Under the pieces are notes generated by a model, which did no database searches, had not been told where the DNA came from, and saw only the letters and a program-made list of their open reading frames with translations. DNA of 64,000 nucleotides from Blastocladiella emersonii ATCC 22665. Its lineage: Eukaryota > Fungi > Blastocladiomycota. The stretch's first letter is position 1. Every line of letters begins with the position of its first letter. This document shows positions 3,355 through 29,725 of this stretch, piece by piece. The stretch is taken from contig JANHCV010000002.1 of assembly GCA_025594325.1 (NCBI GenBank), positions 1,054,001-1,118,000 on the forward strand. Direction: 5' to 3'. Position numbers and translations under genes: made by a program.

Positions 3355-3943
3355 AGAGTCTGTTACATGGAGCTCAGGGCCTCGGCAGATGGTGTGCAGG
3401 TTGCGAGGGGCGCGGGGTCGGCGGCTGACGGAACGATCGCCTGTCTCACCGAAACGTGATCGCGCCACGTGAGGGATGCGAGACGCGTTCTCGCGCGTGT
3501 CGGCGCCTTCCGCCCCGCTGACCAGTCCATCAGTTGTGTGTAGTGTGCGTCGCGAGCACCATCGTCAGGCACGGCTTGGAGGTGAGCGGGGTGGGGATGG
3601 CGGCGCAACGTGGCCCTGCATACGAACGAGCGTTCGGCAGCCGTCACGGTGTGGCGCAACGCGGCCTGGCCGGCGCACACTCGCGCTCCCGCCCACCGAC
3701 TGCTGATGTGCATCGGGGCTCGGTCGATGTGGAGCTTGTTCACCTTAGTTCGTACGACTGCAATGCGTAGGACTTGCCGCGCGGATCGACGTGGTTCACC
3801 GCGGCCAGGGGCCGACCTCATCGTACAAGCCTGAGTTGAGTGCGAATAAGTCAAGAACGAGCGTATATCTTTACATATCGCAAACTGCGGCAACTTCGTG
3901 GCTGCCATTCACACCGAGAGAGTCGCATGCGAAGTCTGACCTG

Positions 3944-5992
3944 CTACTGCTGCTGCGACCACTGGCCAAGCAGCATGCGCGGAGCGAGTGCTGCAAGCAA
4001 CTGGTTTGCATTGAGTCCCACAGTCGGCGTCGCGGAGCTCGGCAACATCAACGACTGCGGCGCGGTGCTCGGCAGCAGCAGGGACTGCGAGGCGGAGCTT
4101 GGCAACAGCAGCGACTGCGATGCGGAACTCGGCAGCAGCAACGGCGCTCCACCGGACTGCATCAAGCCTGAGGCAGCGAGTTGCAGAAGCTGGGTTTGGG
4201 AAAGGCCGAGAGGCATCGTCAACGCGCCCTGCGGCAGGATCAGAGACTGGGACTGAGCCGCCGCGTTCGGCATGGAGCCCTGGGCGAGCGCAAGCTGAAG
4301 GGTCGGCGAAAGAAGCGCGCCAGCAAGCGAGTTCTGCATCCCAGCAAGCTGCTGCAGGCTCTGCAGCTGCACGAGCTGCGTCATGTTGGGAAGCACAAAG
4401 TTGGGTACGAGAGCCGTCGCGGCGCTGACGACGGGTATGGGATTCGAGGACGGCGAGCGAGAGCGTGCGCGACTCGACTTGTTCGAGCGGGTCTGGTGCG
4501 ACCGTTCGCGCGAATGAGAGCGAGAGCGTGAGCGCCGATCGGACTTTCGAGACCGGTGCGATCGCGACTCGCGCTTGGGCGAGCCGTCCTCGCGATGAGT
4601 TGAGCGCTTCGACTCGCGCAAACGCGAAGGATGACGTGGGCGATCCCGATCACTGTCGTGGCTCCGACGCGAGCGAGAAGGCGAAGCGTTGCGCGAGCGA
4701 GAAGAAGAAGCGTTGCGCGAGCGAGAAGGAGAAGCGTTGCGCGAGCGAGAAGGAGAAGCGTTGTGCGAGCGAGAAGGCGAACCCCTGCGTATGCGAGAAG
4801 GCGACGACTTGCGTGAGCGAGAAGGTGACGACTTGCGCGACCGGGACTGAGGGAGCGACCGCGCGGGCGATCGCGACGCGGAGCGAGATCTCGAGCGATG
4901 AGCGCGTTCCCGAGTGCGCGACGGTAGCGAAGCCGGTGGGCGCATCTCGCCGTTCGGTTCCAGCGGCGCATTACTGCGAGCAGGACCGCGTTCGTGCGAG
5001 CTCGGGGGATCGCGCCCCGAAATAGCCGATCGGCGAGCCGACGTTCTGGCCGGCATAAACGTACGCGCCCAGGTTGGCATGTCGCCAATAGCAAGGTTGA
5101 AGCAGCCGCGCGCAAGTTTTTTCGAGATCTCGCTAGACGAGCGAGCAGGGCAAAGGTCAGCAGCGACGCGACGGGGGAGAAACAAGGTCGAACGTACAGG
5201 CACGACGCATCCCACGCGAGCTCCATGGTCACGACGCAATCGGTCAGGCCGATGCCCGAGCGGCAAGCGTTTTGGCAATCGGTGATGCTGTAAAACTCGC
5301 ACAAGTACTGACGCGAGCTACAAATCGACCAACGAGCACGTCAGCACCGAGGCCCTGTAAGCATCGACCAGCAGAAGATGGACGAGATGCAAGCGTACTC
5401 TTCCGTCGTCGCACCCGGGATCACCTCGAACCGAAAGAGCGGACCAAAGCTAGCCAGCTCCGGCTCAAGCGTGCGCCCGAGGTCGGCAGGACAGACCGTG
5501 GACGACCGGATCGTCACAAGAACCGAGGCGACGCCGATCGTACCCGGCTCGCACGGAGTCAAAGCGTGGCACCTCCGGCTGGGCATAGCGTAGTACGGCT
5601 CAAGAATCATGTCGCGGCCAACGCGCCGCCCTCGCAGCTGCTCGAAAGCCTTCATGCTGTCGCGGAGATCGTGCTACCGTTGGGCACGTGTGAGATGCAG
5701 CGGGCGCGGCAGTATCAACTCTCAATCGTACGAAGTAGGCGAAGGCCCAGTTTCCTCCTGGGCCCAGGATAGCTTTGATCTCGTAGCAGTTCTTGACGAG
5801 GGGCCACAGCAAACCCATGACGTCCCGCCTCGCCAGCTTGGACGAAAAGCCGCAGACGCGCAGTGTCCGCGAGGGCGGCATGTTCTTCATAGTCAGGATC
5901 TCATCGTCGTCGAGGGCGCCGTTGCGCGCGGGCGTGGCGGGAGGCGCGCGAGGGGGCGACTGCTGCCCTCGCGTGGAACTGGATGCTGACAT
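3944..5992 (-). CDS. Mei2-like RRM1-RRM2 + RS-tail protein, array copy C
   Basis: Exons: NMPPSRTLRVCGF..WAFAYF|HDLRDSMKAF..YYAMP..GVASVLVT..FGPLFRFEV|SRQYLCEFYSITDCQNA..MELAWDASC|EISKKLARGCFNL..MPTW, then RS repeats and a Q/L-rich tail. Canonical splice sites keep the frame. Confidence 0.75.
4035..4143. repeat. About 3.6 x 30-nt coding tandem repeat in the copy C tail
   Basis: Units of the form gagctcggcaacatcaacgactgcggcgcg; encode LLLPSSASQS-like 10-mers on the minus strand. Confidence 0.8.
4670..4837. repeat. 7 x 24-nt coding tandem repeat in the copy C RS domain
   Basis: Unit cgagcgagaaggagaagcgttgcg with variants; encodes SPSRSRNA-like 8-mers on the minus strand. Confidence 0.9.
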
Positions 5993-6214
5993 GGTTGCCG
6001 TTGAATCAATTGCATAAAGTTTCCATCACCAAATCCATCGTCCGCTCGCGGGATACGATGGAGTGTGAGGAGCGGGAGACGAAACGGGCCCGCTGCCGGC
6101 AGCGCAGCGGTGGCTCGCCTCGCGGCTCCAAGTCGCGCCGCTCAAGCTTGCCCACCGATGAGGCCAATCCAATGACCTTTATTCAAAGTATACGCCAGCC
6201 GTTCTCGGCTCGCC

Positions 6215-8500: not shown

Positions 8501-10349
8501 TCATTGCGGACGGCGATTCAGCCCGATGTAGTGCTGCTGCAGCGCAAAGAGCTCCGCCGCCGTCGACTGCGAAGCTTGCATGGAAGCCCCCAGAAACGGC
8601 ATCGCCAGTGAGCCAGGATGAGTTGCCCCGCCAAGCTGCTGCGCAGGCGGAGCGCCGTGCTGAGCGTACGGCAAGTTGAACGGCATCGGTGGCAGCGCAC
8701 CGTCCGGCTGCGTCAGACCCGGAACGAAGCCCGCGAGCGCCATGCCCGCTGGGATTCCTCCGTACCCAGTCATCGGGCCAAAGGAAGCGTATGCGAGCGC
8801 GTGCATGCCGGCGGAGAGCGCGCACATCGCGCGCTGCGGTTGATGCTGATGTCCAAAGAAACCGAGTCCGTTGAGAAGCGCAGGGTGAGTGTAATTAGGA
8901 AGCGAAGACGGCGAGAGCAGGTGCGCGTGAGCATGGCCTGGCTCGTGAGATCGGTCGTGTCGCGATCGAGATGAAGGCCGTGTACGAGAGCGAGAGCGAG
9001 AGCGTGATCTCGGTCTCGACGACCAGGAACGAGACGAGGAACGCGAGCACGTTTGGTGCCGGGTGCGAGGACGAGCAGACAGCGAGCGTCGGCGGGCCGA
9101 GCTGCGGCCTCGACGAGATGAAGGGCCAGGCGATCGATGTTGATCGAGCGAGCGGGAAAGAGACCGCGAACGCGTGCGCGAGCGGTACCGAGAAGGATCA
9201 CGATTGCGACCTCGGCCGAGGTGGAAGTCGTGAACAGGGTCAGGCCCGCGGGAGCTCGGCCGAGTGCGCGGCGACGGCCGTCGCGGCGAGCGCGACCGAC
9301 TTAGGGTGCGCGTTGATGACGACGGTCTCGACTCGCGCTGCTTCTTGAACTGAGCCTCGCGCTTCACCCAGTTGGGCGCCCTTACTTGGAACCCGGGGCG
9401 CTCGGTTTCTGAGCTGGCGTAGGACGATGCCCATCGCGGGAGGTGGCCCCTGTAGATGCGGAAGTGACTCCGAGCGACCTTGTCGGAGATTTCCCTACGA
9501 CTTGCGCGAGCGGTCAGTCTCGTTGTTGAAGGAGCAAAGCGGAAGCAACGTACACGCAGCGCCGGTCCCACGCGCGTTGAATGGTCGCGCTCATGGTCTT
9601 GAACTGGCCTCGCGATATGATGACCGCGGTGCATTTTGACGTGTCGTAATACTCGCAAAGAAACTGGCGCGAGCCCGAGCTATCACTACACGCCCGTGCA
9701 GAGTACATTCGAGTGAGTGTGAGTGTGAGTCGCCTGGTCCGGTAGCAGCCCAGAGGAACGTTTTCTTTGCGTACCCAGCAGTCGCAGACCGCGTCACTTC
9801 TTCGAAGAGAAAGATGCTCCCGAACTGCTCGAGCTCGCGTTTCAGCGCGGACGCGACCACTTCATCGGTTTGGTCGCGAAAAGACTTGACGGTGGCGAGC
9901 AGCGAGGCGACGCCGATCGTCGTCTCCCTGCACGGCGTGAGCGAGGGGACCAAACGGTTGGGCATCGAGTCGAAGACAAGCAATCCCGAGCTGATCAATC
10001 CCGCGTGGCGGCCCAGCTCGCAGTGCTTGAGCCGCGCCATGGCTTCGACACTGTCGCGGAGATCCTTCTGTTGCGCACACCGAGTGAGAACCGTCCATGC
10101 AAGAGCGTTGAGGTCGAAGCTTGGGCGGGCGCGTCAGCGGAAGAATCGAAGCGCGATGGCCAGACGTGAGGTCCGTTTGAGCGTCATGAGCAAGGCTCGC
10201 CATGGCGTTTCGGAAAGTGTTGATGGCATAGCGTGAAGGCGACAGCGGCCGAACGTTTCGTGGCCCGGGCGAGCGGGGTAGCTCGACCGGGCTGGATAGC
10301 AAGTTTGAGTCCGGTGAGGCGACTGGTACGCCCGGTTTGGCAGCTTCAA
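8501..10349 (-). CDS. Mei2-like RRM + RS-tail protein, array copy E (first exon junction looks disrupted; possibly truncated or pseudogene)
   Basis: CRLHAMPSTLSETPWRALLMTLKRTSRL aligns with copy B RRM1, but an in-frame TGA lies at 10134-10136 with no suitable GT donor. Downstream KDLRDSV..GVASLLAT..|SRQFLCEYYD..QRAWDRRC|EISDKVARSHFRI..LPRW and the RS tract are intact. Confidence 0.6.
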
Positions 10350-16602: not shown

Positions 16603-19601
16603 ATGGACGCTCCGCCGCAGAGCCCCGGCCGCACGCTCGCCGCCGCCGCCGCCTCGGCCGCGCCCGACGTGCAGGCCGCCCTCGCCGACTACGAGATCGG
16701 CCACGTCCTCGGCAAGGGCAAGTTCTCGCAGGTCTACCTCGCCACGTCTCGCTCCACAGGCCGCAAGGTACTACTACCCGCTGTGCTGCTGTGTGGGAAC
16801 CCGCCGTGCTCACACCCCGATCCCCGGTCCCGTAGTTCGCCTTCAAGGTGCTCTCCAAGCTCGACCACCGCCCGCGCGTCATGGCCAAGCTCAAGCGCGA
16901 GATCGACATCCTCAACGCCCTGCGCGGCGCCAAGGTCTTTGTCCCGTGCGACTCGGCCCTCGACGCGACCACCGCCGCCGCCGACGCGTCCGACGCGACC
17001 TACACGGAGAGCGAGGACGACGACGGCACCGGTTTCTCGACGTACGGGTCCCGCTCGACGCTCGCCGGCAGCGGCAGTGGCGGGTACCGCAGCAACCGGT
17101 CAGGGACCCGGCTCCCGGCCGCCGCCGCCAACGTCGACCGCCGCCATCGCCACCTGCACGGCGGCACCTCGTCCTCGTCGCAGACCACGCTCAGCGGCCA
17201 CCCGAACATTGTCGACATGTTCCAGACCTTTGAGACGCCCTCGGTCACCATCATGGTGCTTCAGGTACGCGTCGGATCACTCCGTGGCCTCTGGACCGCT
17301 CCCCCACCTCCCCCACCTCCACTAACCCCATTTTTTTCGATTTTCGCGAAAAATTTACAGCTGCTTTCGGGCGTGAACCTCCACGATTTCGTGTTCGAAT
17401 CAATCCGCCTATCCGAGTCGGTAGCGCGGGGCATGTTCCGGCAGCTCGCGTCGGCCGTGAGCTTCTGCCACGCGCGCGGCGTCGTCCACCGCGACCTCAA
17501 GATGGGCAACGTGATGCTGATCCTCGCCCAGCCGCCGCCTCCGCCCAACGACCTCGTGCTGCCCTCCTCGCCCATGTCCGACGTGACCCCGGCCCCGCTC
17601 GGCCCCGCCAGCCCGCGCCGCGGCAGCGAGCCCGCCGTCGTCCAGATGAGCCCCGCCCGCATCGCCTCGGGCCGCTCGCCCGCGACCCCGCGCCACTGGC
17701 CGCGCCGCCTCGAGCTCACCCGCAGCTACCGCCTCAAGTTCCGGTCCGCCATCGTCGCCGACCCGCTCGGCGAGGACCGCTACCCGGTCCCGCGCGACCC
17801 GTGCACCGGCCGACCCTGGATGCAGCAGGAGATCGACGAGTGCGGCGGCTGGCTCGTCAAGCTCGTCGACTTCGGCCTCGGCAGCGCCTTTGACCCGCAA
17901 GAGTACCGCCACACGGCCGTCGGGTCGCCCGGCTACTTCTCGCCCGAGGTCGCTCAGGGCGTGTCGTACGTCGGGCCCGAGGTCGATGTCTGGTCCCTCG
18001 GCGTCGTGCTCTTCGAGATGACCACGGGCATGCACCCGTTCTCGGCCAAGGACCTGCCCACCCTCAAGGAGATCGTCATCCGCGGCCGCTTCGCCATCCC
18101 GCACCACGTCTCCCCGGACCTGCGCCGCACCTACACCCGTCTCATGAACGTCGACCCCGCCCGGCGGCGCAACCTGCACGTCCTCGACGTCGACCGCTGG
18201 ACCAACGACGGGTACGCGACGTCGCCCGCCTACGCCGACCCGCCCGAGGAGGACCTCGCCGGCGACGTGGACGCGGCCCAGATCGACGAGATCGCCGCCT
18301 CGATCCCCATCGAGGACGAGTCCTTTGGCCCCACCACCGCCGCCCGCCGCCGCCGGTCCGCCTCGGCCCACGCCCTCGTCGCCGCCTTTGCCGACGCCGC
18401 CAACTACGGCCGCCCGCGCGCCAACACGGCCCGCACTGCGGCGTCCGCGCCCGACGGCACCGCCGTGTGGAGCGACGGCGACGATCCGGCCGCCGACCTC
18501 CGCGGCCGCCACGCGACCACCGAGGAGGACGAGGCCGCGGCGGCCGAGATGGCCTACGCGCGCGACCTCGCGCGTCGGCTCCGCCGGTTCAACGCGTCCG
18601 TCCCCGCCCACCTCGGCGGCGCTCCGCCCCGCGGGTACCACGGCGTCCCGCCATCACCGCGCCGCGCGCCCGCTGCCCTCGCGTCGGCTCCCGCATCGAC
18701 CACCGCACACTCGCCACCCGCCGTCTTGCGCCCCGCCCACACGCGGTCGCGCAGCAAGCATCGCCCGACAGCGCTCCAGGTCGTCGCCGAGCCCGCGGCG
18801 CCCGCGCTGTCGACGTCGCCCACCTCGCCGACTGGGCCGCAGGCTCGGACGACGCCGCCGCCGTCGATTTCGGCCGGATCGGCGCACCCGCCACCGTTCC
18901 CGCCAGCGACGCCGCGCCGCGGGTCCGCGCCCGCCGTACACTCGGTCGAGCCCGTCGCGACCGCGCCGGGGACCGGCCACCAGCACCACGCGTCCGCGGC
19001 GGCCGTCGCCGCGCGCGTGTTCGCCCAGGTCCCGCCGCCGCCCGACACGCCGCCGACGCACCTCCGCGGCGCGTCCGTGGCGACTGCGACTGGCGCGACG
19101 CTGGCCGGGTCCACGGCACCGCCGCCGCCGCCCGTCGCTGCACCCGCGCCGCTGCGCATGCGCAACACGAAGAAGTCGTCGCGCCTCGACTGCACCTCGG
19201 GTGCCGTTGCCGCGGCGACGGCCGGCACGAGCAAGTGGGGCGGGTGGTGGCCGTGGGGCAGCAACACGCAGCACCACCAGGATGCGGCCGCGCAGCAGCA
19301 GAACCGTCGGCCTTCCGCCGAGAGTACCGCCAGCACGTCGAGCGGCGGGAGCACCGCGGTCGGCGACGTGTCGACGGTGTCGCTCGACGACCACCACTCG
19401 GGCAAGCGGACCGGGTCCGTGTCGACGGCGAGCACCGCTGCCGCGACCGCGCTCACGTCGTCCGTGTCCGCGTCCACGGCCGCGGCGCCCATCCCGCCCG
19501 TCCCGCGCAAGACGCGCTGGTACAACCGCCTGTTCTCGGTGTCAGGACCAAGCGCCAGCAGCAGCAGTGGGGCCAAGTCCGCGGGCCGCGCTGCGCGGTA
19601 G
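16603..19601 (+). CDS. Ser/Thr protein kinase, CAMK group (Kin1/MARK-like), 2 introns, two large in-domain insertions
   Basis: YEIGHVLGKGKFSQV, AFKVL, HRDLKMGN, LVDFG, GSPGYFSPE, DVWSLGVVL motifs; long P/A/S-rich C-terminus. Confidence 0.9.
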
Positions 19602-20007
19602 CCCGTACGCCGCTGCGCCGCGCTGCGTCGATCCCTCGCTCAACTCGTTCATCTACACCCGTTCCCGTTTCGTTCGTTCATCATGCTGTATTCCCTCCTC
19701 CCCGTCCATGGCACTTGCTCTTCCTCGCTCACCATCATCCCACTTTTTTGTTCGTGCCCCCCGTCTGGACCCGCCCTCTCACGTCACTCGATTCAGCAGC
19801 AGTACATTCAGTCTTCGACGGTCACGCACTTGATCAGCGGCATCGAGAAGGAGAAGCCGGGACGTTGGTCACGACGGCTGCAGTGCCACCGGAAGCACGA
19901 GGTGAAACGCGCGGCTCACAACATGTGATCGATCGACGCGTTTGCGTGGCGCACCTGGCCGAGCTGCCGCTCCCAGCGCATCCCCTCTCCCCAAGCGAAC
20001 CGCCCCC

Positions 20008-21262
20008 ATGGAATCCTCTCCCGACATGCAGCAAATGGACCTCCCCGACGAACTATGGCTGAGCATCGTCGAGCGCTTACCGCAAGCCAACTTTTGCCGC
20101 GACCTCGCTGCGCTGGGCAGGGCGAGCCGCCAGCTTGCCGGGCTCGTCCGTCCCATCCTCTACCGGACCTTGACCATTGAGCTGGACACCGGCCCGCGCA
20201 CCGGACACGTTGACAGCCGAGTTGACTTGAGCAAGTGGCCCGGCTGGCTCCCGCTTGTCCGCGAACTTGTGCTGCAGGGAAGAGATTACGGCACGCCCGC
20301 TGGCGCCGCGGTCTCAACCCCGCCACTTGCCGCCGCCACACAAATAGACTCGGCGGATCTTGCCCCGCCGATTTCGATCGATTACACTGTCATTGTCGCT
20401 GAGCTTGCCGAAATCAATCCGATCACGTCGTTTTGCGTGCGAGGAGTCACGCTCGAGTACGGCTTGTTGATCCAAACGCTTTCGAGCTTCGCACAGACCC
20501 TTACTCGCCTCGACCTGCACTTACCAAGCTTCACGGGAGAAATTGACCTCGAGCAGCTCGTGTTCCCTTCACTGACTCGACTTTCAATCTCTGCGTTTCA
20601 TGCGATTCAAGCTCTCCCGCAGGCGCCCAACTGCCGTACTCTCCTGCTTGTTCTACCCACTTTCCCCCAAAAACTCATCCACCAGATCCGGGCGATGCAG
20701 AGCTTGGCATCGTTGACCGCCCTTGGTAGCGATGCAAAGTCAAGAAGCTACCTCCCGTCTATGCTGCTCGCCCCCGGCTCCATCGCGACGTCGCTCGTCC
20801 ACTGGAACTCGGTCTGGCTGTCGGTCGATGACCTCGAAAAGTTGCCCCCCTTTACCGCATCTCCAAACCTTCGCAAACAGCCGGGGGCCGAACGTCATGT
20901 CTTCACAGTCGACAACACACAATGGCAAGCTTGTTGAGGCGTGCAAGTCGCGTCATTGGCCGGATTTCAAGCGGTTTAGGTGGATAAGACGGCGGTACAG
21001 CGTCACCTTCGCCCACAGTCGGCGGTTGACGTAGCAGGCTGCTATCCCGCTGCGGGGCCGTAGAACTCGCAGCGAGCGTGAGAGACTCGAGATCCACCGC
21101 CGCCAAGTTCGAGTCAGTCGGTTCATTAAGCTCCATGGTGATGCGGTGATTGAACGTTTCGAGCATCTGGGAGCGGGGGCATTGCATCCGATGAACCGTC
21201 ACTTTCGCGGACACGGCATGGACACGGACCGAGCCACCAATCACGAGTTCCGCACCGTTTGA
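20008..21262 (+). pseudogene. F-box/LRR-like gene with apparent frameshift and premature stop
   Basis: F-box motif DLPDELWLSIVERLP..LGRASRQLAGLVRPILY and LxxL repeats. The frame appears to switch at the C6 run 20845-20850, and a TAG at 21032-21034 interrupts the continuing frame. Confidence 0.55.
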
Positions 21263-21721: not shown

Positions 21722-24356
21722 CTACTCGGGGATGTCGAGCGTCTCGCGGTACTGGGCGATCGTGTCGCCCTCGAACTTGCGAAGACGGCCGTCGGCGCAC
21801 ACCCAGATCTCGTTGCAGCACATGTCGATGAAGCGCTGGTCGTGCGACACGATGAGCACACCGCCCTTGAAGTTGCGGACGGCCTCGGCGAGCGAGTCGA
21901 CCGACATGTAATCGAGATGGTTGCTAAAGGGTGGTGGAGTCGGGCGAGTGTGAGTGACCGCCGCTGCGGGTATCGCGAGTGGTCGAGGTGAACGTACGTG
22001 GGCTCATCGAGAATGAGGACGGCTACGCGAACACGGGACGAGTGTTAGTCAGTATCGCGCGACGACGACATCGATCACACCCATGAAGTAACGTACCTGC
22101 CCGCTGCAGCGCGAGGGAAGCGAACACGACGCGCGACTTCTGACCACCGGAGAGCGTGCCCATGGCCTGGAGACCGACACGGCCCGAGATACCGAAGCAG
22201 CCGAGCTGGCGGCGGTACTCCTCGTCGGGGTAGCCGGGGAAGTGCTTGCCGAGGAACTGGACGGGGGTGAGGGACAGGTCCTCGAGAGTATCGACGTGGT
22301 GCTGGGCAAAGTAGGCGAAGCGGAGGCGGCCGTTGCGGAACACACGGCCCGACGTGGGCTCGAGCGCGCCCGTGAGCAGGTTGAGCGCCGTGGTCTTTCC
22401 TATAGCGCGGCGAGAGCGAGGGGATCGCGTCAGCGACGGTCGTGAAGCACGACGACAACGGGAGAAACGGACCTGCGCCGTTGGGACCGACGAGGGCGAC
22501 ACGCGACGTCATCTGGATGTCGAGACTGACGTCCGTGAAGATCTTGGGCTTGTCGGGCGAGTAGCCAAACGAGACCGAGTCGAGCTGCAGGATGGGCGGC
22601 GAGAGCTTCTCGGGGTCGGGGAACTGGAACGTGACCTGGATATCCTCGGTGGGGACCTCGAGCTCGGGCAGCTTCTCGAGGATCTTCATGCGGGCCTGGG
22701 CCTGGGACGCGCGCTTGGCGTTGTAGCGCCAGCGGTCGACGAACGCCTGGAGGTGCTGGCGGTGCTGCATCTGGGCGTCGTACTCGCGCTGGGCCTGCTT
22801 GCGGCGCTCGTCGCTGGTGCGCTCAAAGTCGGAGAAGTTGCCGCGGTACACGTCGATGCGCTCGTTGTGCTGGTGCATGATGTCGGTGGCGACCACGTCG
22901 AGGAACTCGCGATCGTGCGACACGACCACGAGCGTCGAGGGCCAGTTGCTGAGGTACTTGGACAGCCACACGACGGCAGGGATATCGAGATGGTTGCTAC
23001 GCGTGGGAGTGAAGGAGGAGGTGAGCGAGTGGGCGAGTGGTGGCGTGAGGGAGGGTCGTACGTAGGCTCATCGAGAAGAAGGAGATCGGGACTAGATGAC
23101 ACGAACGACAAGTCAGCAATCAGCTCGTAATCGCACACAAAAGGAACGTACCGAGTGAAGAGCGAGCGGGCGAGGGCGACACGCATACGCCAACCACCCG
23201 AGAACGAGTTGAAGGGCTGCTTCTGCATCTCGCGCGAGAAACCGAGACCCGAGAGAATGGTGCCGGCGCGGGCCTCGGCGGTGCTGGCCTCAATGTCGTC
23301 GAGCTTCTGGTAGACCTGCTTGAGCTTGGCCTCGATGGACGCCGAGGTCTCGCCGGGCGGGAGCGGGGTGCCGTCGGCGGCGGCGCTGAGCAGGCCGTTG
23401 AGCTCGTTCTCCTGGCGGAGGAGGTAGGCGCGGTAGATGTCGGCCTTGACGACGCACTCGAGGCACGGGGTGTCGTCGGTCTGGAGGTCCTGCTCGACGT
23501 AGCCGATCGACACGTGCTTGAACTTTTCCATCCCAGGAATGTCGCGGTTCGCGATTCCGCGTAGAGTAGTTGATTTCCCGACCCCGTTGACTCCGACTAG
23601 GCCGTAGCGGCGGCCGTAGACGAGCGAGAGGTTGGCGCCGGTGAGGATGCGGAGGCCGGGGACCGAAATGTCAAAGTTACTGAGGTGGATGTCGTTGGAC
23701 TTGCCGCGCGCCGCCAGAATGTCCTTGATCTGCGCGTCCGAAATGGGCTGCGGGCCCTTGGGGCGGTCAATGGTCTTGAACGAGACCTCGATGTCCGTGT
23801 CGCGCTTGGCCATCTTGGCCTTGAGCTTGAGCTCGGCCTTTTCGAGCTTGGCCGCGTCGACGCGCGACGTCACCTTGCGGTTGCCGGCGTGCGTGATGTC
23901 GGCGTTGACGCCGGGCATAAAGGACTGGGTGGTGGCCTCGAGCGCGTTCATGTGGACGGGCCCGCCGGCGAGTCGGCGCGGACCGCCCGGGCCGCGGGTG
24001 ACGCCGCCGAACGTAATGGCCTCGTCGTCCTCCTCATCGTCGTTGGCAGCAGCAGCGCGCACGCCGAGGTAGGGGACGAGGGCGTCGCACAGGGCGCGGA
24101 TCTTGGCGGCGGGCGGCGGCTTGACGGCCGTGCCGTGGGCGGCGGCGGTGAGCGTCGGGGCATCGAGGAGGACCGGCGAGAAAAAGGCCGAGAGCGACTC
24201 GGCGGGCGACTCGCCAAAGTCGCCGGGACGCGCATCTTGGACGGTGCCGGCGATCCAGTCGACGACCGACTCGGGCAGCGGCGACTCGAACGCGGCGTGC
24301 ACCGCGGCGGTGACGGGATCGATTGCCGTAGCTTCGGCGAGAATAGTCGATGTCAT
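21722..24356 (-). CDS. GCN20: ABCF-family ATPase, GCN20/ABCF3, multi-exon
   Basis: Two ABC cassettes: GVNGVGKSTTL, FSGGWRMRVALA, LLLLDEPT, GPNGAGKTT, LSGGQKSRV, GGVLIVSHD; no TM domains. Confidence 0.93.
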
Positions 24357-24520
24357 GGCGATAAGCGACTGCTGGGTACGACAGTGATTGCCGCGCTCGC
24401 CCGTCTCGGGACGCCAGCTTCGGCCGCTGCCGCGGCGGCGGGCGGAGAGCTCGTTGATTCGGGTCACGTCGCATCAGCTGACCCGTAGACGACGCGTCGC
24501 GCGCCGCGATCACGACGCCG
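24185..24520 (-). repeat. Direct repeat copy 1: functional GCN20 5' coding end and promoter
   Basis: 24185-24322 matches 26937-27074 at 129 of 138 nt (hand count); weaker similarity continues into the promoter (ggtcacgtcgcatcagctgacccgtag vs ggtcacgccgcgtcacctgaactgtag). Confidence 0.9.
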
Positions 24521-24893
24521 ATCACCGCCACCGTGTCCCGCCACCGCACCAAAAAACACCACACACACACCGCAAAATGTACCACCGAGAAACGCGCCCC
24601 AATGTATACACTTTAGTGAAATACACCACCGCAAAACGAGGACTCACCACTGCACTCGGGTTCAGCTCCGCGCTCTTGGCAAGCGTAGGATAGCACGCCA
24701 GTGCAAGCGAGAATATTTTTCAGTGCAGGTAAAGATGACGGGAACAGTTCATTTTCTGAGGCTTGGGCCAAACACACACCCAGCCCAGGAACGAGTTCAA
24801 ATGACGGATTCACTGACGGGGTGAGAAATGAGTGGCTGACTGACTGAACACCGCAGACCGCCCTGGCACAGGGGAACGAGCTGGCGGCCGGCC

Positions 24894-24899
24894 TATAAG
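24894..24899 (+). promoter_or_regulatory. TATA-like box of the endonuclease gene
   Basis: TATAAG about 90 nt upstream of caacATG at 24988, followed by a pyrimidine-rich leader. Confidence 0.5.
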
Positions 24900-24987
24900 G
24901 TCCCCGCCTCGCCGCGGCCCACATCCTGCTCTTCAATAACGAAGCAACTCTTTCCTCCTACGCCTCCATCTGCTCAACGTCATCAAC

Positions 24988-26920
24988 ATGGCCAAGGGCG
25001 CAAAACGCGTCCTAGGCGACAAAAAGTACCCCGTGTACAAAAAGTACATTGGGAACCGCCCCAAGCTGGTCGCGTGCCTGGCTGAGCTCGGTCGCAACTA
25101 CGACCCGCGCGACCCCAAGAAGAAGGAGCCAGCGGCTGGTCGCCACGACGACTGGCTCTACCACAACCAGGAGGACGACACGCTGCGCGTCGGCACCAAG
25201 AACCGGCACCAATCAACGACCAACAACCCGAACCTGTTCAAAGTCCTCCTCAACGAGCAGGTCTGCTCCTGCTGCCTCGTCAAGTCGTGCCAGCGCGAGG
25301 GCGAGACCTCAGCTGTCGCCGTTGCCGCCCGTGCTCAAGCTCGCGAGACGGCCCCGCCGATCACCCACACGCTCGACTCGGCGCGCGAGGCCAACCTCAA
25401 GATTATCATCTCGACGACGGGCCTCAAGTACGACAACACCAAGGACGACCAGTACTTTATCTGGCGGCGCCCTCTCAATCCTCTGACTGGCGAGCCGATT
25501 CGCAACGTTTCTGTGGCAAACTTCGAGGGCAAGTACCGCGACCACGAGTACAAGGACTTTTTGTGCCGCTTCCGCAATAAGGGCAATTGCGTCGGCCGCG
25601 AATCTTTTGATCTTTGTTGCCCAAAGACCGGTGTTCTTCGCGACAACTGCTTACTCGTTTGCTGTCTTGGCGAGTGCGGCACTCGCGGCCATCGCTGGCG
25701 CAAGTGCAGCGAGTGCAAGGCCACCGGCGGCCACTTGGCCTTCCCCGAGACCTTTGCCACGGACAAGTCGATGCAGCAGGCCGCCGAATTTGTCGCTCTC
25801 GAGGCCGGCTTGGACTTTGTTTCGGGTCGGTTTGCTTCCGTGTACACTCCGAGTGGATTCAAGTCCGTTTCCAAGGCCTGTATTGAAGCGTCCCGCGTCT
25901 TCAACCTCGACGAATCCGAGATCCAAGTTTACTTTTGGTCGTACATCTCGGACGAAGGCGTGTACGTGCCCTCGACCCTCTACTTTCCGACTGTTTACGA
26001 GATTCCGAATGCCATGAAGGCGCTTGGGGCCAGGTTCTTTGTCGGCGATCGCCTTGTCCGTTGTGTTTGTGGCGCGCGCAGTGCTTTTCACCCCGAGCAC
26101 ATTTGCCAGCCCCACGGAGTCGCTCAGCGTGCGTGTTCGCGCTGCGGCGTGGGCAAGCGCGTTTGCGAGCACAAACGGTCAATCAACTACTGCAGCAAAT
26201 GCCCAGGGCAGTACTACTGCAAGGTTCACCGCCGCCTCCTACAGCTCCAATCCGGCTTGTGGTGGTGGTCAGCTCAAGTGCGAGCGCAGGGCTTTCAAAC
26301 GGTTCTGCAAACCGTGCGGCGGTTCGCATGTCTGCAGCGTCAAGTCGTGCGATTTTGCTCTCTCAGACCGCACCCCCTCGCCAAGTATAGCGGCAAGTGT
26401 GCCCATTGCTTCGCTCAACCATCCTGACTTGTTCGCCAAGATTTCCAACGCCAACCACGGCAAAAAGGAGCGCATCATCATGCAGCACCTCAAGCCCATC
26501 TTTGACAATGTCCTTCACTCTTTCACGACGTCTCGCGACAAGCAGCTCAAGGGCTGTGCTTTTCGCCCCGACTCAATTTTGATTGGCGAGTTCTTTGCAG
26601 TTCAGTGCGAAATCGACGAGCTGCAGCACAACCAGGCGCTTGGGAATCCTGGCAAGCACACGCCCAAGCTTGAGCAGGCGCGTCTTGAGGCCATCCAAGC
26701 TTGTCTTCACAAGCCGCTCATCGTCATCCGCATCAACCTGGACTGGTACGACGACGCTACTGGGACGCGCCACGAGGGCATGTTCACGTCGACCAACGAG
26801 CCCAACGGGTTCATCTTCAACGCCCGCATCAAGGTGCTCAAGGACACGCTGAATGAGGCCCTCAACAGCAAGCCGACCAAGCGTCTTCAAGTCATCAACC
26901 TGTACTACAACGAGGTCTAA
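24988..26920 (+). pseudogene. Cys-rich zinc-finger + PD-(D/E)xK (Vsr/DUF559-like) endonuclease of giant-virus type, with three apparent 1-nt frameshifts
   Basis: CEHKRSINYCSKC and CKPCGGSHVC repeats, KYSGKCAHCF, and C-terminal RPD..VQCEIDELQH..KPLIVIRINLDWY..LYY. The pieces alternate between two frames over 26235-26420. Confidence 0.7.
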
Positions 26921-26936
26921 GTTCGTTGAGAGTACT

Positions 26937-27290
26937 AGGCCGAGAGCGACTCGGCGGGCAACTCGCCAAAGTCGCCGAGACGCGCATCTTGGACGGTGCC
27001 AGCGATCCAGTCGACAACCGACTCAGGCAGCGGCGACTCGAACGCGGGGTGCACCGCAGCGGCGACGGGGTCGACAGGGATGCTCGCTGTCATGGTGTGG
27101 CTACGTTGCAGGGCAGTGCTTCGCGACGCCAATCGGGTATGGGTTCGAGGAGGCCGCGCGAGATGAGGGGCGGCAGCGAGCAAGCGCTCAGCGTTGACAG
27201 CGGTCACGCCGCGTCACCTGAACTGTAGCGGCGCGTCTTCTCGACGCGTCTCGCGAGTCGCGACGCGACCCGATCACGGCTCCATCAGAA
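26937..27290 (-). pseudogene. Direct repeat copy 2: truncated GCN20 5' end and old promoter
   Basis: Encodes MTASIPVDPVAAAVHPAFESPLPESVVDWIAGTVQDARLGDFGELPAESLSA, then TAG formed at the junction with the element. Confidence 0.88.
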
Positions 27291-27937: not shown

Positions 27938-29725
27938 ATGATCATGTCGCCCATCGCGACCGGACCGCTCCTCGACCACCACCATCCCGCCTGCGTCCCC
28001 CGCGGCGCACCCCATGCATCAACTCCCTGCATTGCACCGGCACCGCTCTCCCAAACTGCTGGCGGCGGCGACCTGACCGACGCCGACCTCGACGCCGTGC
28101 TGATCGACCTCGCCGCGCCCGAGCGCTGTTCTGCGCCTGCCGATACCGCCGACGACTGGTTGTGGCTCCTCTCAGCCGACGCTGCTCGCCAGTCGCCCGC
28201 CATACCACCAACCGTCGCGCCCGCGCTTGACGACGCTCTCGACTCGGCCGTGTGGGTCCTCGACGACGACTGCCCCACTGACAGTAACCGGCTCGCCTCG
28301 ATCGCCATGCCCATCGACTCCATGACTGCACCCGGTTCACCGCGCGCCGAGACGCTGCTCGAGGCCGAGCACCTGCTCGCCTCGCCCACGACCACCGCAC
28401 CGCCCAGCGCCGCCGCACCGCCGCTCGCCACCTCGTCGGCAGTCCCGAAACACCCGCCCGTGCTGCGTCAGCAGTCGTCGGTCGCCTCGGGCATGTCGCG
28501 GCGCAGCGACACGGCGGCGGGTTCGTCCGCGTGGGCGATGCCCGAGGGCGCGCATCTCGCCTCGCCCGCAAAACCCTCGTTCCCCGCCTCCTCCCTACCC
28601 GCGTCGTCCATGACGTCGCGCGCCGCGACCTCGGTGGCGGTGCAGATCGTCGCCAACATTGCGGTCGCCGTCGCGATCGTGCTCGTCAACAAGCACGTCC
28701 TGAAGACGTTCCCGTCGCCGCTGCTCCTCACGCTCGCGCACCAGCTGACGTGCGCCGCCGTGACGCGCCCCGCGGTGTTGGGCGCTCTGGGCGTGCCGCT
28801 CGCGCCTACGCGGATCCCCGCGCGCGATGCCGCCATCGCTGGCGTCACCAACGTCGCCGGCCTCGTGCTCATGAACGCGTCGCTGCGCGTCAACCCCGTC
28901 GGCGTGCACCAGCTCGCCAAGCTGTCGGGCGTCCCCGCTATCGCCGCGCTGCAGTGGACGCTGTTCGGCGCACCGCCACCGGGACCGCGGTCGCGCGCCG
29001 CCCTCGGCGTCCTGCTCGTCGGTGTTGCCCTCGCCACCTTCCAGGACTTTGGCGGCGGCAGCAGTGACGATTCGCGGTCGGGAGGCCCGCTGGGACTCGC
29101 GCTCGCAGCAGCCGCTGTCGTGTCAACAGCGCTCGCCCAGGTCACGCTGCAGCACCTGCCGTCGTTCCGCGGCGTGTCAGGCATGCAGACTGTGGCCGCC
29201 ATGAGCCCGTGGTCGTCGGCCGCATTGCTCGCCGCCGCCGCGCTACAATACGGTCCCGGCCCGCTGCTGCACTGGCTCGTCGGCACCGTGTCCGACGCGG
29301 CGCCCGAGCTCGCGACCTCCGCCGACCCGGCGATCCCGTGGGTCCCGCTCCTTGCGTCGTGCGCGCTCGCCGTCGGCGCAAACGCGGTCGGCAACGGGCT
29401 CATCAAGTCGACCTCGGCCATCACCTACAACGTCGTCGGCCACCTCAAGACGCTCATCATCCTCGCCGCCGGCGCGTGGATGTTCGACGGGCCGCCTACC
29501 GCCGGCGGTGGGAGCGGCGGCGCGGTGCGCGCGGTCGGGATCGCCGCGTCGATTGCCGGTATGGCCGCCTACACGTACTTCCAGAGCACGGCGGCGCCCG
29601 CCCCGCCAGCATCCGGCGACGGAGGCGACAAGAAGCCGCGCCAGCGACGCGTCGTCGTCGCGCCACCCATGGGGCCGGCGGGGCGGCGAGGGTCGGGCGG
29701 CGGCAAGTACCGCGGCACGATTTGA
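27938..29725 (+). CDS. Triose-phosphate/nucleotide-sugar transporter family (SLC35E3/UXT-like) with long acidic N-terminal extension
   Basis: NIAVAVAIVLVNKHVL, MNASLRVNPVGVHQLAKL, TSAITYNVVGHLKT motifs; about 10 TM segments from 28630. Confidence 0.85.
   Translation: MIMSPIATGPLLDHHHPACVPRGAPHASTPCIAPAPLSQTAGGGDLTDADLDAVLIDLAAPERCSAPADTADDWLWLLSADAARQSPAIPPTVAPALDDALDSAVWVLDDDCPTDSNRLASIAMPIDSMTAPGSPRAETLLEAEHLLASPTTTAPPSAAAPPLATSSAVPKHPPVLRQQSSVASGMSRRSDTAAGSSAWAMPEGAHLASPAKPSFPASSLPASSMTSRAATSVAVQIVANIAVAVAIVLVNKHVLKTFPSPLLLTLAHQLTCAAVTRPAVLGALGVPLAPTRIPARDAAIAGVTNVAGLVLMNASLRVNPVGVHQLAKLSGVPAIAALQWTLFGAPPPGPRSRAALGVLLVGVALATFQDFGGGSSDDSRSGGPLGLALAAAAVVSTALAQVTLQHLPSFRGVSGMQTVAAMSPWSSAALLAAAALQYGPGPLLHWLVGTVSDAAPELATSADPAIPWVPLLASCALAVGANAVGNGLIKSTSAITYNVVGHLKTLIILAAGAWMFDGPPTAGGGSGGAVRAVGIAASIAGMAAYTYFQSTAAPAPPASGDGGDKKPRQRRVVVAPPMGPAGRRGSGGGKYRGTI

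Follow-up and report, generated by a model that had tools for sequence, protein, structure and literature searches.

How does an ordinary gene of a fungal chromosome come to possess two 5' ends, one in use and one dead, with a gene of giant-virus type between them? The question is raised by the nuclear DNA of Blastocladiella emersonii ATCC 22665 (assembly GCA_025594325.1, contig JANHCV010000002.1), of which a stretch of 64,000 nucleotides, called here the window, was analysed. The gene concerned is H9P43_002289, coding for an ABC-F protein of the GCN20/ABCF3 type. Its promoter block and first codons are found twice in the same orientation, once joined to the body of the gene (copy A) and once as a truncated relic farther upstream (copy B); the 2.4 kb of unique DNA between them carry, in antisense, a gene whose C-terminal domain is related to proteins of giant viruses. 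The observation itself is real and unusual. Of the origins weighed below, the one that best matches the anatomy is a homing-like arrival of the nuclease gene along with a diverged GCN20 5' end; it is proposed here tentatively, at somewhat less than an even chance.

Anatomy of the GCN20 locus

The H9P43_002289 protein contains two ABC_tran domains and an ABC_tran_Xtn linker (Pfam), and its N-terminal 230 residues can be aligned with an Allomyces javanicus ortholog (50% identity) that shows a weak match to PWI_ABCF3; on these grounds the GCN20/ABCF3-type label appears reasonable. When the region was compared with the window by BLASTN, a single repeat was found, positions 24185-24322 and 26937-27074 being identical in 129 of 138 nt with a spacing of 2752 nt. 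This tract belongs to a duplicated unit of about 345 bp, and the unique insert enclosed by the two copies covers 24529-26936 (Table 1). Homology ends sharply at the 26936/26937 junction, which lies only 16 nt past the stop codon of the nuclease gene. Read in the direction of GCN20, the relic has 52 codons, MTASIPVDPV...AESLSA, followed by a TAG, the last two bases of which come from the insert; the live copy A reads MTSTILAEATAIDPV...AESLSA(57)-F58, and the equivalent of the junction is codon 58. Copy A has five codons more than copy B near the start (a 15-nt indel) and is seamlessly continuous with the rest of GCN20.

The original prediction, made from the letters of this stretch, had described the same arrangement: a relic promoter with about 52 codons, cut at the equivalent of codon 58 and closed by a TAG that the junction creates, an antisense gene, and a second promoter with an N-terminus that runs without a seam into GCN20, with an identity of 129/138 beside the junction that falls off outward. 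Reading of the sequence and alignment, including that of the promoter blocks, agree with all of this; the antisense open reading frame (ORF) is present as H9P43_002290, and the duplicated unit ends at 27280, near the claimed 27290.

Table 1. Features of the GCN20 locus (positions in the window)
Feature	Position	Strand	Basis or remark
Live ABCF3/GCN20-type gene H9P43_002289, 762 aa, introns present	21722-24356	-	Annotated; start ATG at 24356
Copy A, coding part, codons 1-57 of the live gene	24185-24356	-	High-identity core 24185-24322
Copy A, 5' untranslated region (UTR) spacer 24357-24430 and promoter block 24431-24528	24357-24528	-	Block homologous to 27169-27280
Unique DNA, left part of the insert; presumed nuclease promoter	24529-24987		No homology upstream of copy B
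Giant-virus-type nuclease gene, antisense to GCN20, three frameshifts	24988-26920	+	Stop codon 26918-26920
C-terminal endonuclease-like domain, 166 aa, ORF intact	26420-26917	+	Motifs RPD ... ExDExQH ... R ... IRxNxD
16 nt from the nuclease stop codon to the junction; right end of the insert	26921-26936		Direct sequence reading
Copy B relic: ATG 27093, 52 codons, junction-made TAG	26934-27093	-	ORF reading and alignment
Copy B, 5' UTR spacer 27094-27168 and promoter block 27169-27280	27094-27280	-	Alignment

Judging from its position, the promoter block of copy A would now serve GCN20; the promoter region of copy B faces a neighbouring gene, transcribed divergently, whose start is at 27944. 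Within the insert, the left part (24529-24987) has a GC content of 0.55-0.59, versus 0.65-0.73 in the flanks. Searches for repeats and tRNA genes revealed no terminal inverted repeats, long terminal repeats, tRNA genes or tandem arrays at the ends of the insert, and the proteins of the locus contain no transposase or reverse transcriptase domain of Pfam, as had been anticipated from the sequence. The flanking duplication is 345 bp long and diverged, and is thus not a short target-site duplication. No block of viral genes surrounds the insert, and no further copy of the nuclease or other viral match was found in the window.

The exactness of the architecture, namely the sharp junction just past the stop codon, the seamless join and the TAG at the junction, supports a homing-type arrival. 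A right boundary placed so close to the end of the gene suits an element with defined ends, and occurrence in a single copy is what is expected of a site-specific homing gene.

An arrangement in which the relic is an alternative first exon, spliced to the rest of GCN20 with the nuclease gene nested in the intron, was considered and rejected, as the end of the relic has no GT donor and the equivalent position of copy A has no AG acceptor.

Structure and decay of the inserted gene

H9P43_002290 is open in one frame from 24988 to 26427 and in another from 26024 to 26920. The first frame contains the N-terminal 416 codons; Cys-rich modules are found at about 26050-26418, and the frame changes near 26236-26265, 26350-26370 and 26415-26420, all within 190 nt, separating the C-terminal nuclease domain from the remaining protein. 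A Cys-rich module of the first frame, C-E-H-K...C-S-K-C-P-G...C-K-V, is repeated in the second as C-E-R-R...C-K-P-C-G-G...C-S-V; the first frame then resumes for K-Y-S-G-K-C-A-H-C-F-A-Q, and the second continues from H-P-D-L-F. The last of these joins is certain, since the same C-x2-C-F/Y...F-P-D lead-in directly precedes the domain in its relatives. The public model of the gene (504 aa) excises two unsupported introns, 25594-25677 and about 26032-26371, thereby masking the three frameshifts, and is probably wrong. By its reading frames the gene is a pseudogene, and its present product has 479 aa (ORF 24988-26424), without the nuclease domain. When this ORF and the nuclease domain were used as queries in word-indexed searches, the gene's own model alone was matched; the N-terminal 350 aa have no relative in the databases searched, and the AlphaFold2 (AF2) prediction for them, made without an alignment, reached a predicted local distance difference test (pLDDT) score of 34, too low to be of use.

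In spite of the frameshifts, no in-frame stop is present in 582 codons. Under simulated neutral substitution the probability of zero stops is 0.044 at a divergence of 0.05 and 0.002 at 0.08; because of this absence of stops, neutral drift of the ORF is estimated at less than about 5%, corresponding to a short time only. GC at third codon positions (GC3) is 0.76-0.79, far above the gene's own GC1 and GC2 and close to that of the host genes (0.86-0.91), a composition which, on sequence grounds, shows that the gene has long evolved as coding sequence within a GC-rich genome. The low decay of the ORF together with the high divergence of the non-coding DNA around it (see below) argues against a recent tandem duplication that merely captured junk DNA: a nuclease decay below about 0.05 is too small for a duplication old enough to account for that divergence. 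The data would instead fit either a young insertion that joined 5' ends already diverged, or an old insertion in which selection kept the nuclease for most of the time and gene conversion kept the two coding cores alike.

Part of these features could in principle be produced by faulty assembly, with haplotypes or collapsed repeats misjoined and the frameshifts arising as sequencing errors. The authors of the assembly removed duplicated contigs by hand (PMC9730499), and the clustering of the three frameshifts is also in line with such an origin. The assembly was made, however, from PacBio HiFi reads at about 185x with a mean length of 10.5 kb and was polished with Illumina data and Pilon (PMC9730499); judging from this length, single reads can span the whole structure of 3.1 kb, so that mis-assembly is unlikely. 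Moreover, a unique insert of 2.4 kb lies between the copies, the neighbouring host genes are intact, and the copies differ by indels and at about 30% of positions in non-coding DNA, unlike what collapse of alleles would give. An artefact is thus considered very improbable.

Divergence of the two 5' ends

In the coding core the copies differ at 9 of 138 positions (6.5%), with five synonymous and four non-synonymous changes across the 45 shared codons; synonymous divergence (dS) is 0.154, non-synonymous divergence (dN) 0.041 and dN/dS 0.27. In the non-coding part 27 of the 154 aligned columns differ and 51 more columns are gaps, a divergence of about 17-30% or more with many indels. The promoter blocks can still be recognised as homologous, with a local alignment score of 47 versus 22.1 +/- 2.8 for 200 shuffles and an identity per length of 0.71 versus 0.57 +/- 0.03. 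The 5' UTR spacers are of near-equal length (74 and 75 nt) and align no better than shuffled sequence, and beyond the promoter blocks no homology can be aligned. The limit of high identity coincides with that of protein conservation, the part from about codon 12 onward being also alignable with Allomyces. With Allomyces as reference, the relic has two or three derived amino-acid changes and copy A has one.

If copy B were a local copy in decay, with the same neutral rate in its coding and non-coding parts, and with the live copy adding at most about the same again in non-coding DNA, the expected ratio of non-coding to coding divergence would be 1.2-1.5; the observed ratio is about 3 or more with indels excluded. 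Such uneven divergence is the pattern expected if the two 5' ends had evolved separately, each under selection, in separate lineages. Taken with the low decay of the nuclease, it appears to favour arrival from a diverged allele over simple duplication in place.

A duplication in place would require a more elaborate course. A break or a replication error near codon 58 would have given rise to a second copy of some 345 bp from the 5' region of GCN20, with a viral gene captured at the junction; the nuclease would then have remained functional for long, as a selfish or a domesticated gene, while the non-coding parts drifted and conversion from the live copy preserved the 138-nt core. The duplication is indeed direct and in tandem, with a non-homologous junction, and high identity is confined to one uninterrupted tract beside that junction, as in a conversion tract. 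The low dS of the core and the single copy of the gene agree with this course too, as does the more derived state of the relic, which is what a decaying local copy would show. Three extra assumptions are needed, however, namely a duplication of 345 bp at the moment of insertion, prolonged selection on the nuclease and conversion limited to the core. Since the boundary of identity is also the boundary of protein conservation, selection suffices to explain the core without conversion; furthermore, a neutral decay of the nuclease below 5% contrasts with the non-coding divergence given above. A local origin of this kind is regarded as rather unlikely, yet as a serious competitor of the homing-type origin.

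Both promoter blocks contain, amid diverged sequence, a common core GGTCACG-Y-CGC on the plus strand (24455-24480 and 27195-27222), which may be a regulatory site of GCN20.

The C-terminal domain and its relatives in giant viruses

The product of 26420-26917 was used as a phmmer query in an exhaustive search of 1.84 billion representative sequences. Fifty distant relatives were found, with E values from 1e-10 to 1e-3 (best 1.4e-10) and 41-42% identity for the best. Ten columns are invariant in the family (P50, D51, E64, D66, E67, H70, R88, R104, N106 and D108), and all ten residues are kept in the window copy. In eight of the ten full-length relatives scanned, the domain is preceded by EsV-1-7 cysteine-rich repeats (PF19114); no piece of the window nuclease matches PF19114 at E <= 10, its own Cys-rich modules having a different pattern. 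Those relatives for which the genomic context could be read are found in contigs of giant viruses, or nucleocytoplasmic large DNA viruses (NCLDV), and a scan of IMG/VR with a pattern derived from a seven-sequence alignment gave at least 549 viral loci of the family, many of them named GVMAG. Kinship of the domain with giant-virus proteins is thus well supported at the sequence level.

The class of the enzyme is less firmly placed. An AF2 model built on the family alignment (pLDDT 87, predicted template-modelling score 0.83) matched predicted structures of proteins named 'Endonuclease' from Pithovirus, cedratvirus, Marseillevirus and Faunusvirus, with E values down to 4e-11 and template-modelling (TM) scores up to 0.77; one DUF559 protein was also among the matches. 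Against solved structures the best matches were all of the PD-(D/E)xK type (Bax1, the R2 endonuclease domain, Hjc, BstEII and McrC), with weak scores (E 0.04-0.5, TM 0.27-0.39). Searches of Pfam, PHROGs and PDB by sequence and by profile, with the nuclease pieces and with the family profile, gave no significant match, and some members of the family show sub-threshold Pfam hints to MTES_1575, CoiA_nuc, DUF559 and Hjc. The invariant P50-D51 and E64-x-D66-E67-x2-H70 are present and the canonical position has no lysine, a motif which presumably resembles the Vsr/DUF559 variants. The original prediction of a virus-type PD-(D/E)xK nuclease thus stands as regards the viral type, and the predicted fold agrees with it, although weakly when compared with solved structures. 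From the model, the domain is likely, but not proven, to be a virus-type nuclease that is PD-(D/E)xK-like.

Several features of the viral loci deserve separate mention. In two viruses, with capsids 48% identical to each other, a family member immediately precedes the major capsid gene (L002, 258-4098; L006, 8001-11349); in L005 (4244-9455), as also in L004 and L045, one immediately follows the gene for RNA polymerase subunit 2 (RPB2). Among 58 dereplicated viral loci RPB2 is adjacent in two, and a gene resembling that of the major capsid protein (MCP) lies within 2 kb in 14. Enrichment beside viral core genes as a series of independent events was rejected, since P0003 and P0022 are syntenic orthologs (MCP 48% identical); the adjacency may reflect conserved synteny or targeting of core genes.

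In L045 a full-length EsV-1-7/nuclease gene (3585-5501) just after RPB2 is followed by a truncated tandem paralog (5599-6126) of 175 aa, in which the motif is changed to IEIDEKYH and a 125-nt promoter/5' end is 88% identical; the arrangement belongs to one giant-virus lineage and recurs in L039, L047, L052, L054, L055 and L057-L059. The near-identical giant-virus contigs of L004 (719-2287) and L005 (1-2343) differ by an intein in a DEAD/ResIII helicase gene (Hom_end_hint, LAGLIDADG), that is, by presence or absence of a classical homing element, near a gene of the nuclease family. In L005, moreover, an intergenic piece of 84 nt (10067-10150) matches the 3' end of the adjacent gene of the nuclease family (9358-9442) with 77-91% identity and looks like a relic of another copy.

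Comparison with other genomes

A search for GCN20 orthologs gave only the gene itself and those of Allomyces javanicus and Catenaria, and a look-up of the exact protein returned the same assembly only. In Allomyces javanicus and Catenaria there is no nuclease gene within 8 kb of GCN20 and no duplicated 5' end; since both lack the insert, the structure arose within the Blastocladiella lineage. The upstream neighbours in these two genomes differ from those of B. emersonii, and synteny is uninformative as to which promoter is native.

Origin of the arrangement

Under a homing-type origin, a related lineage would have possessed an allele in which the nuclease gene stood some 170 bp ahead of the start codon of GCN20. 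In a naive allele a break would have occurred near codon 58, probably made by the nuclease itself, and homology-dependent repair from the diverged, nuclease-bearing allele would have copied in the 5' coding end, the promoter block and the nuclease gene. The incoming 5' end (24185-24528) would now drive and begin GCN20, and the resident promoter with its first 52 codons (26937-27280) would have been left upstream as a dead stub. After fixation, three frameshifts would have inactivated the nuclease gene. Homing endonuclease genes usually degenerate once they are fixed, as described by the Goddard-Burt cycle. The foreign origin of copy A, the identity of the native copy, cutting by the nuclease and homing itself are all steps that we infer.

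The same order of parts could also result from passive integration. A fragment or circle with the nuclease gene and a GCN20 5' end from a related lineage would have entered by a single crossover or by unequal exchange (Campbell-type), the nuclease playing no part. It is generally known that ends-in integration of a piece with a promoter and a 5' end yields a truncated copy, an insert and a full copy, and divergence of the two 5' ends is explained just as it is by homing. Yet the end of the fragment would have fallen 16 nt past the nuclease stop codon only by chance, a near-intact nuclease ORF and a cargo consisting of nuclease alone are left unexplained, and no other traces of foreign DNA were found at the locus or in the window. 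Passive integration is accordingly judged improbable.

Several points weigh against the homing-type origin. Among 71 viral loci of the family no gene-end duplication was found next to a family member, the only repeat being the truncated tandem paralog described above. The comparison is limited to distant orthologs; the searched collections contained no other Blastocladiella sequence, and neither an empty allele nor another genome with the insert nor a further copy of it was found in them. The dN/dS of 0.27 comes from nine changes and does not differ significantly from 1 (binomial estimate about 0.07), and a low dS in the coding core beside strong non-coding divergence could also result if tandem copies had undergone gene conversion. 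Three frameshifts now disrupt the nuclease, and the literature yielded no assay or cleavage data for any member of the family. The sequence around codon 58 is uninterrupted in the live copy A, which leaves its protection from recutting unexplained. Finally, classical homing requires a sexual cycle, and we know of none described for B. emersonii.

On balance, the gradient of identity together with the low decay of the nuclease fits a foreign replacement end better than a plain local duplication, and a nuclear element of the homing type, as originally proposed, is retained as a tentative reading that falls a little short of even likelihood. The fuller claim, that a free-standing homing element with a giant-virus nuclease was once active in a fungal nuclear genome, took a protein-coding gene transcribed by RNA polymerase II as its target and carried a promoter and 5' end, must be considered doubtful; one possible route for it would be break repair that copied viral or foreign DNA into the chromosome.

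Comparison with known mobile elements

The closest parallels are the mitochondrial mORF elements, which carry a replacement gene end and have been described in atp6 of Allomyces macrogynus, in atp6, atp9, cox2 and nad3 of Glomus sp., in atp9 of Rhizopus and in cox2 of Mortierella (PMC3630166). The first case came from Allomyces macrogynus, which belongs to the same phylum as Blastocladiella; in these elements the native relic resembles the sequence of close relatives while the carried end does not, and both mobility and foreign origin have been shown (PMC3630166). As in B. emersonii, an endonuclease gene lies in a host gene, a diverged duplicate end keeps that gene whole, the other end, native in the mitochondrial cases, is left as an unexpressed relic, and the duplicates are closer to each other in protein than in DNA. 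Conversely, mORF elements are mitochondrial and duplicate the 3' end, whereas the B. emersonii locus is nuclear and the 5' end with its promoter is concerned. Their nuclease is in phase with the host gene and belongs to the LAGLIDADG or GIY-YIG families; that of B. emersonii is antisense, has its own upstream region and is of the giant-virus PD-(D/E)xK-like type, and its mobility and the foreign origin of the carried end are presumed.

The seg and mob genes of T-even phages are free-standing homing genes, thought to spread by break repair with co-conversion of flanking markers. They resemble the present case in the position of the nuclease gene, which has a promoter of its own, next to or inside a conserved gene; they differ in being intergenic, in lacking a duplicated promoter and gene start, and in belonging to the GIY-YIG and HNH families.

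With the EsV-1-7/endonuclease proteins of NCLDV the B. emersonii protein shares a homologous C-terminal domain with all the invariant residues, the C-x2-C-F...PD lead-in, Cys-rich modules upstream and structural similarity with a TM score up to 0.77. Identity does not exceed 41-42%, however, and the fungal protein has no EsV_1_7_cys match, an orphan N-terminus of 350 aa and a GC3 of 0.76-0.79. Furthermore, the viral relatives lie in viral contigs near capsid or RNA polymerase genes, whereas the B. emersonii gene stands alone among fungal host genes.

Insertions of giant-virus DNA have been reported in eukaryotes that include zoosporic fungi, in the form of capsid genes and large viral regions, with Blastocladiella not mentioned in the main text of that report (PMC13533422). 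The B. emersonii locus is similar in that a gene of giant-virus type resides in a nuclear genome of the Blastocladiomycota; it differs in its flanks, since none of the insertions described there is bordered by a duplicated start of a host gene (PMC13533422).

Neighbouring genes

The surroundings of the locus consist of ordinary host genes, coding for a protein kinase, the ABC-F protein, a 593-aa membrane protein, a DUF829 protein, Arf and the AROM pentafunctional enzyme. An open ORF of 331 aa (19942-20937, plus strand), located in the interval from the kinase gene to GCN20, for which the public annotation has no gene, shows an F-box-like domain (PF12937) with an E value of 5.7e-05, just under the cut-off; its GC3 is 0.68 and the local GC content 0.57, lower than in its neighbours. 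In the 3' part of the kinase gene (18200-19400) GC content rises to 0.76-0.80, well above the window average.

Significance

Homing endonuclease genes are known in nuclei from inteins, from group I introns of ribosomal DNA and from the domesticated HO gene. To our knowledge none has been described as a free-standing gene inside an ordinary nuclear protein-coding gene, and a literature search gave no report of such a case; likewise, the arrangement with a duplicate gene end is, as far as we know, found in mitochondrial mobile genes and not in nuclear ones. If the structure arose by duplication in place instead, it would still be a neat example of the long retention of a viral gene in a fungal chromosome. 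If the homing-type origin is true, a strategy of bringing one's own gene end would work in the nucleus too, at the 5' end and with the promoter included, and the locus would represent a natural replacement of a promoter by a mobile element. Giant viruses would then be linked to the nuclear selfish elements of early-diverging fungi, and an abundant, uncharacterised family of giant-virus nucleases would gain a candidate activity and a target.

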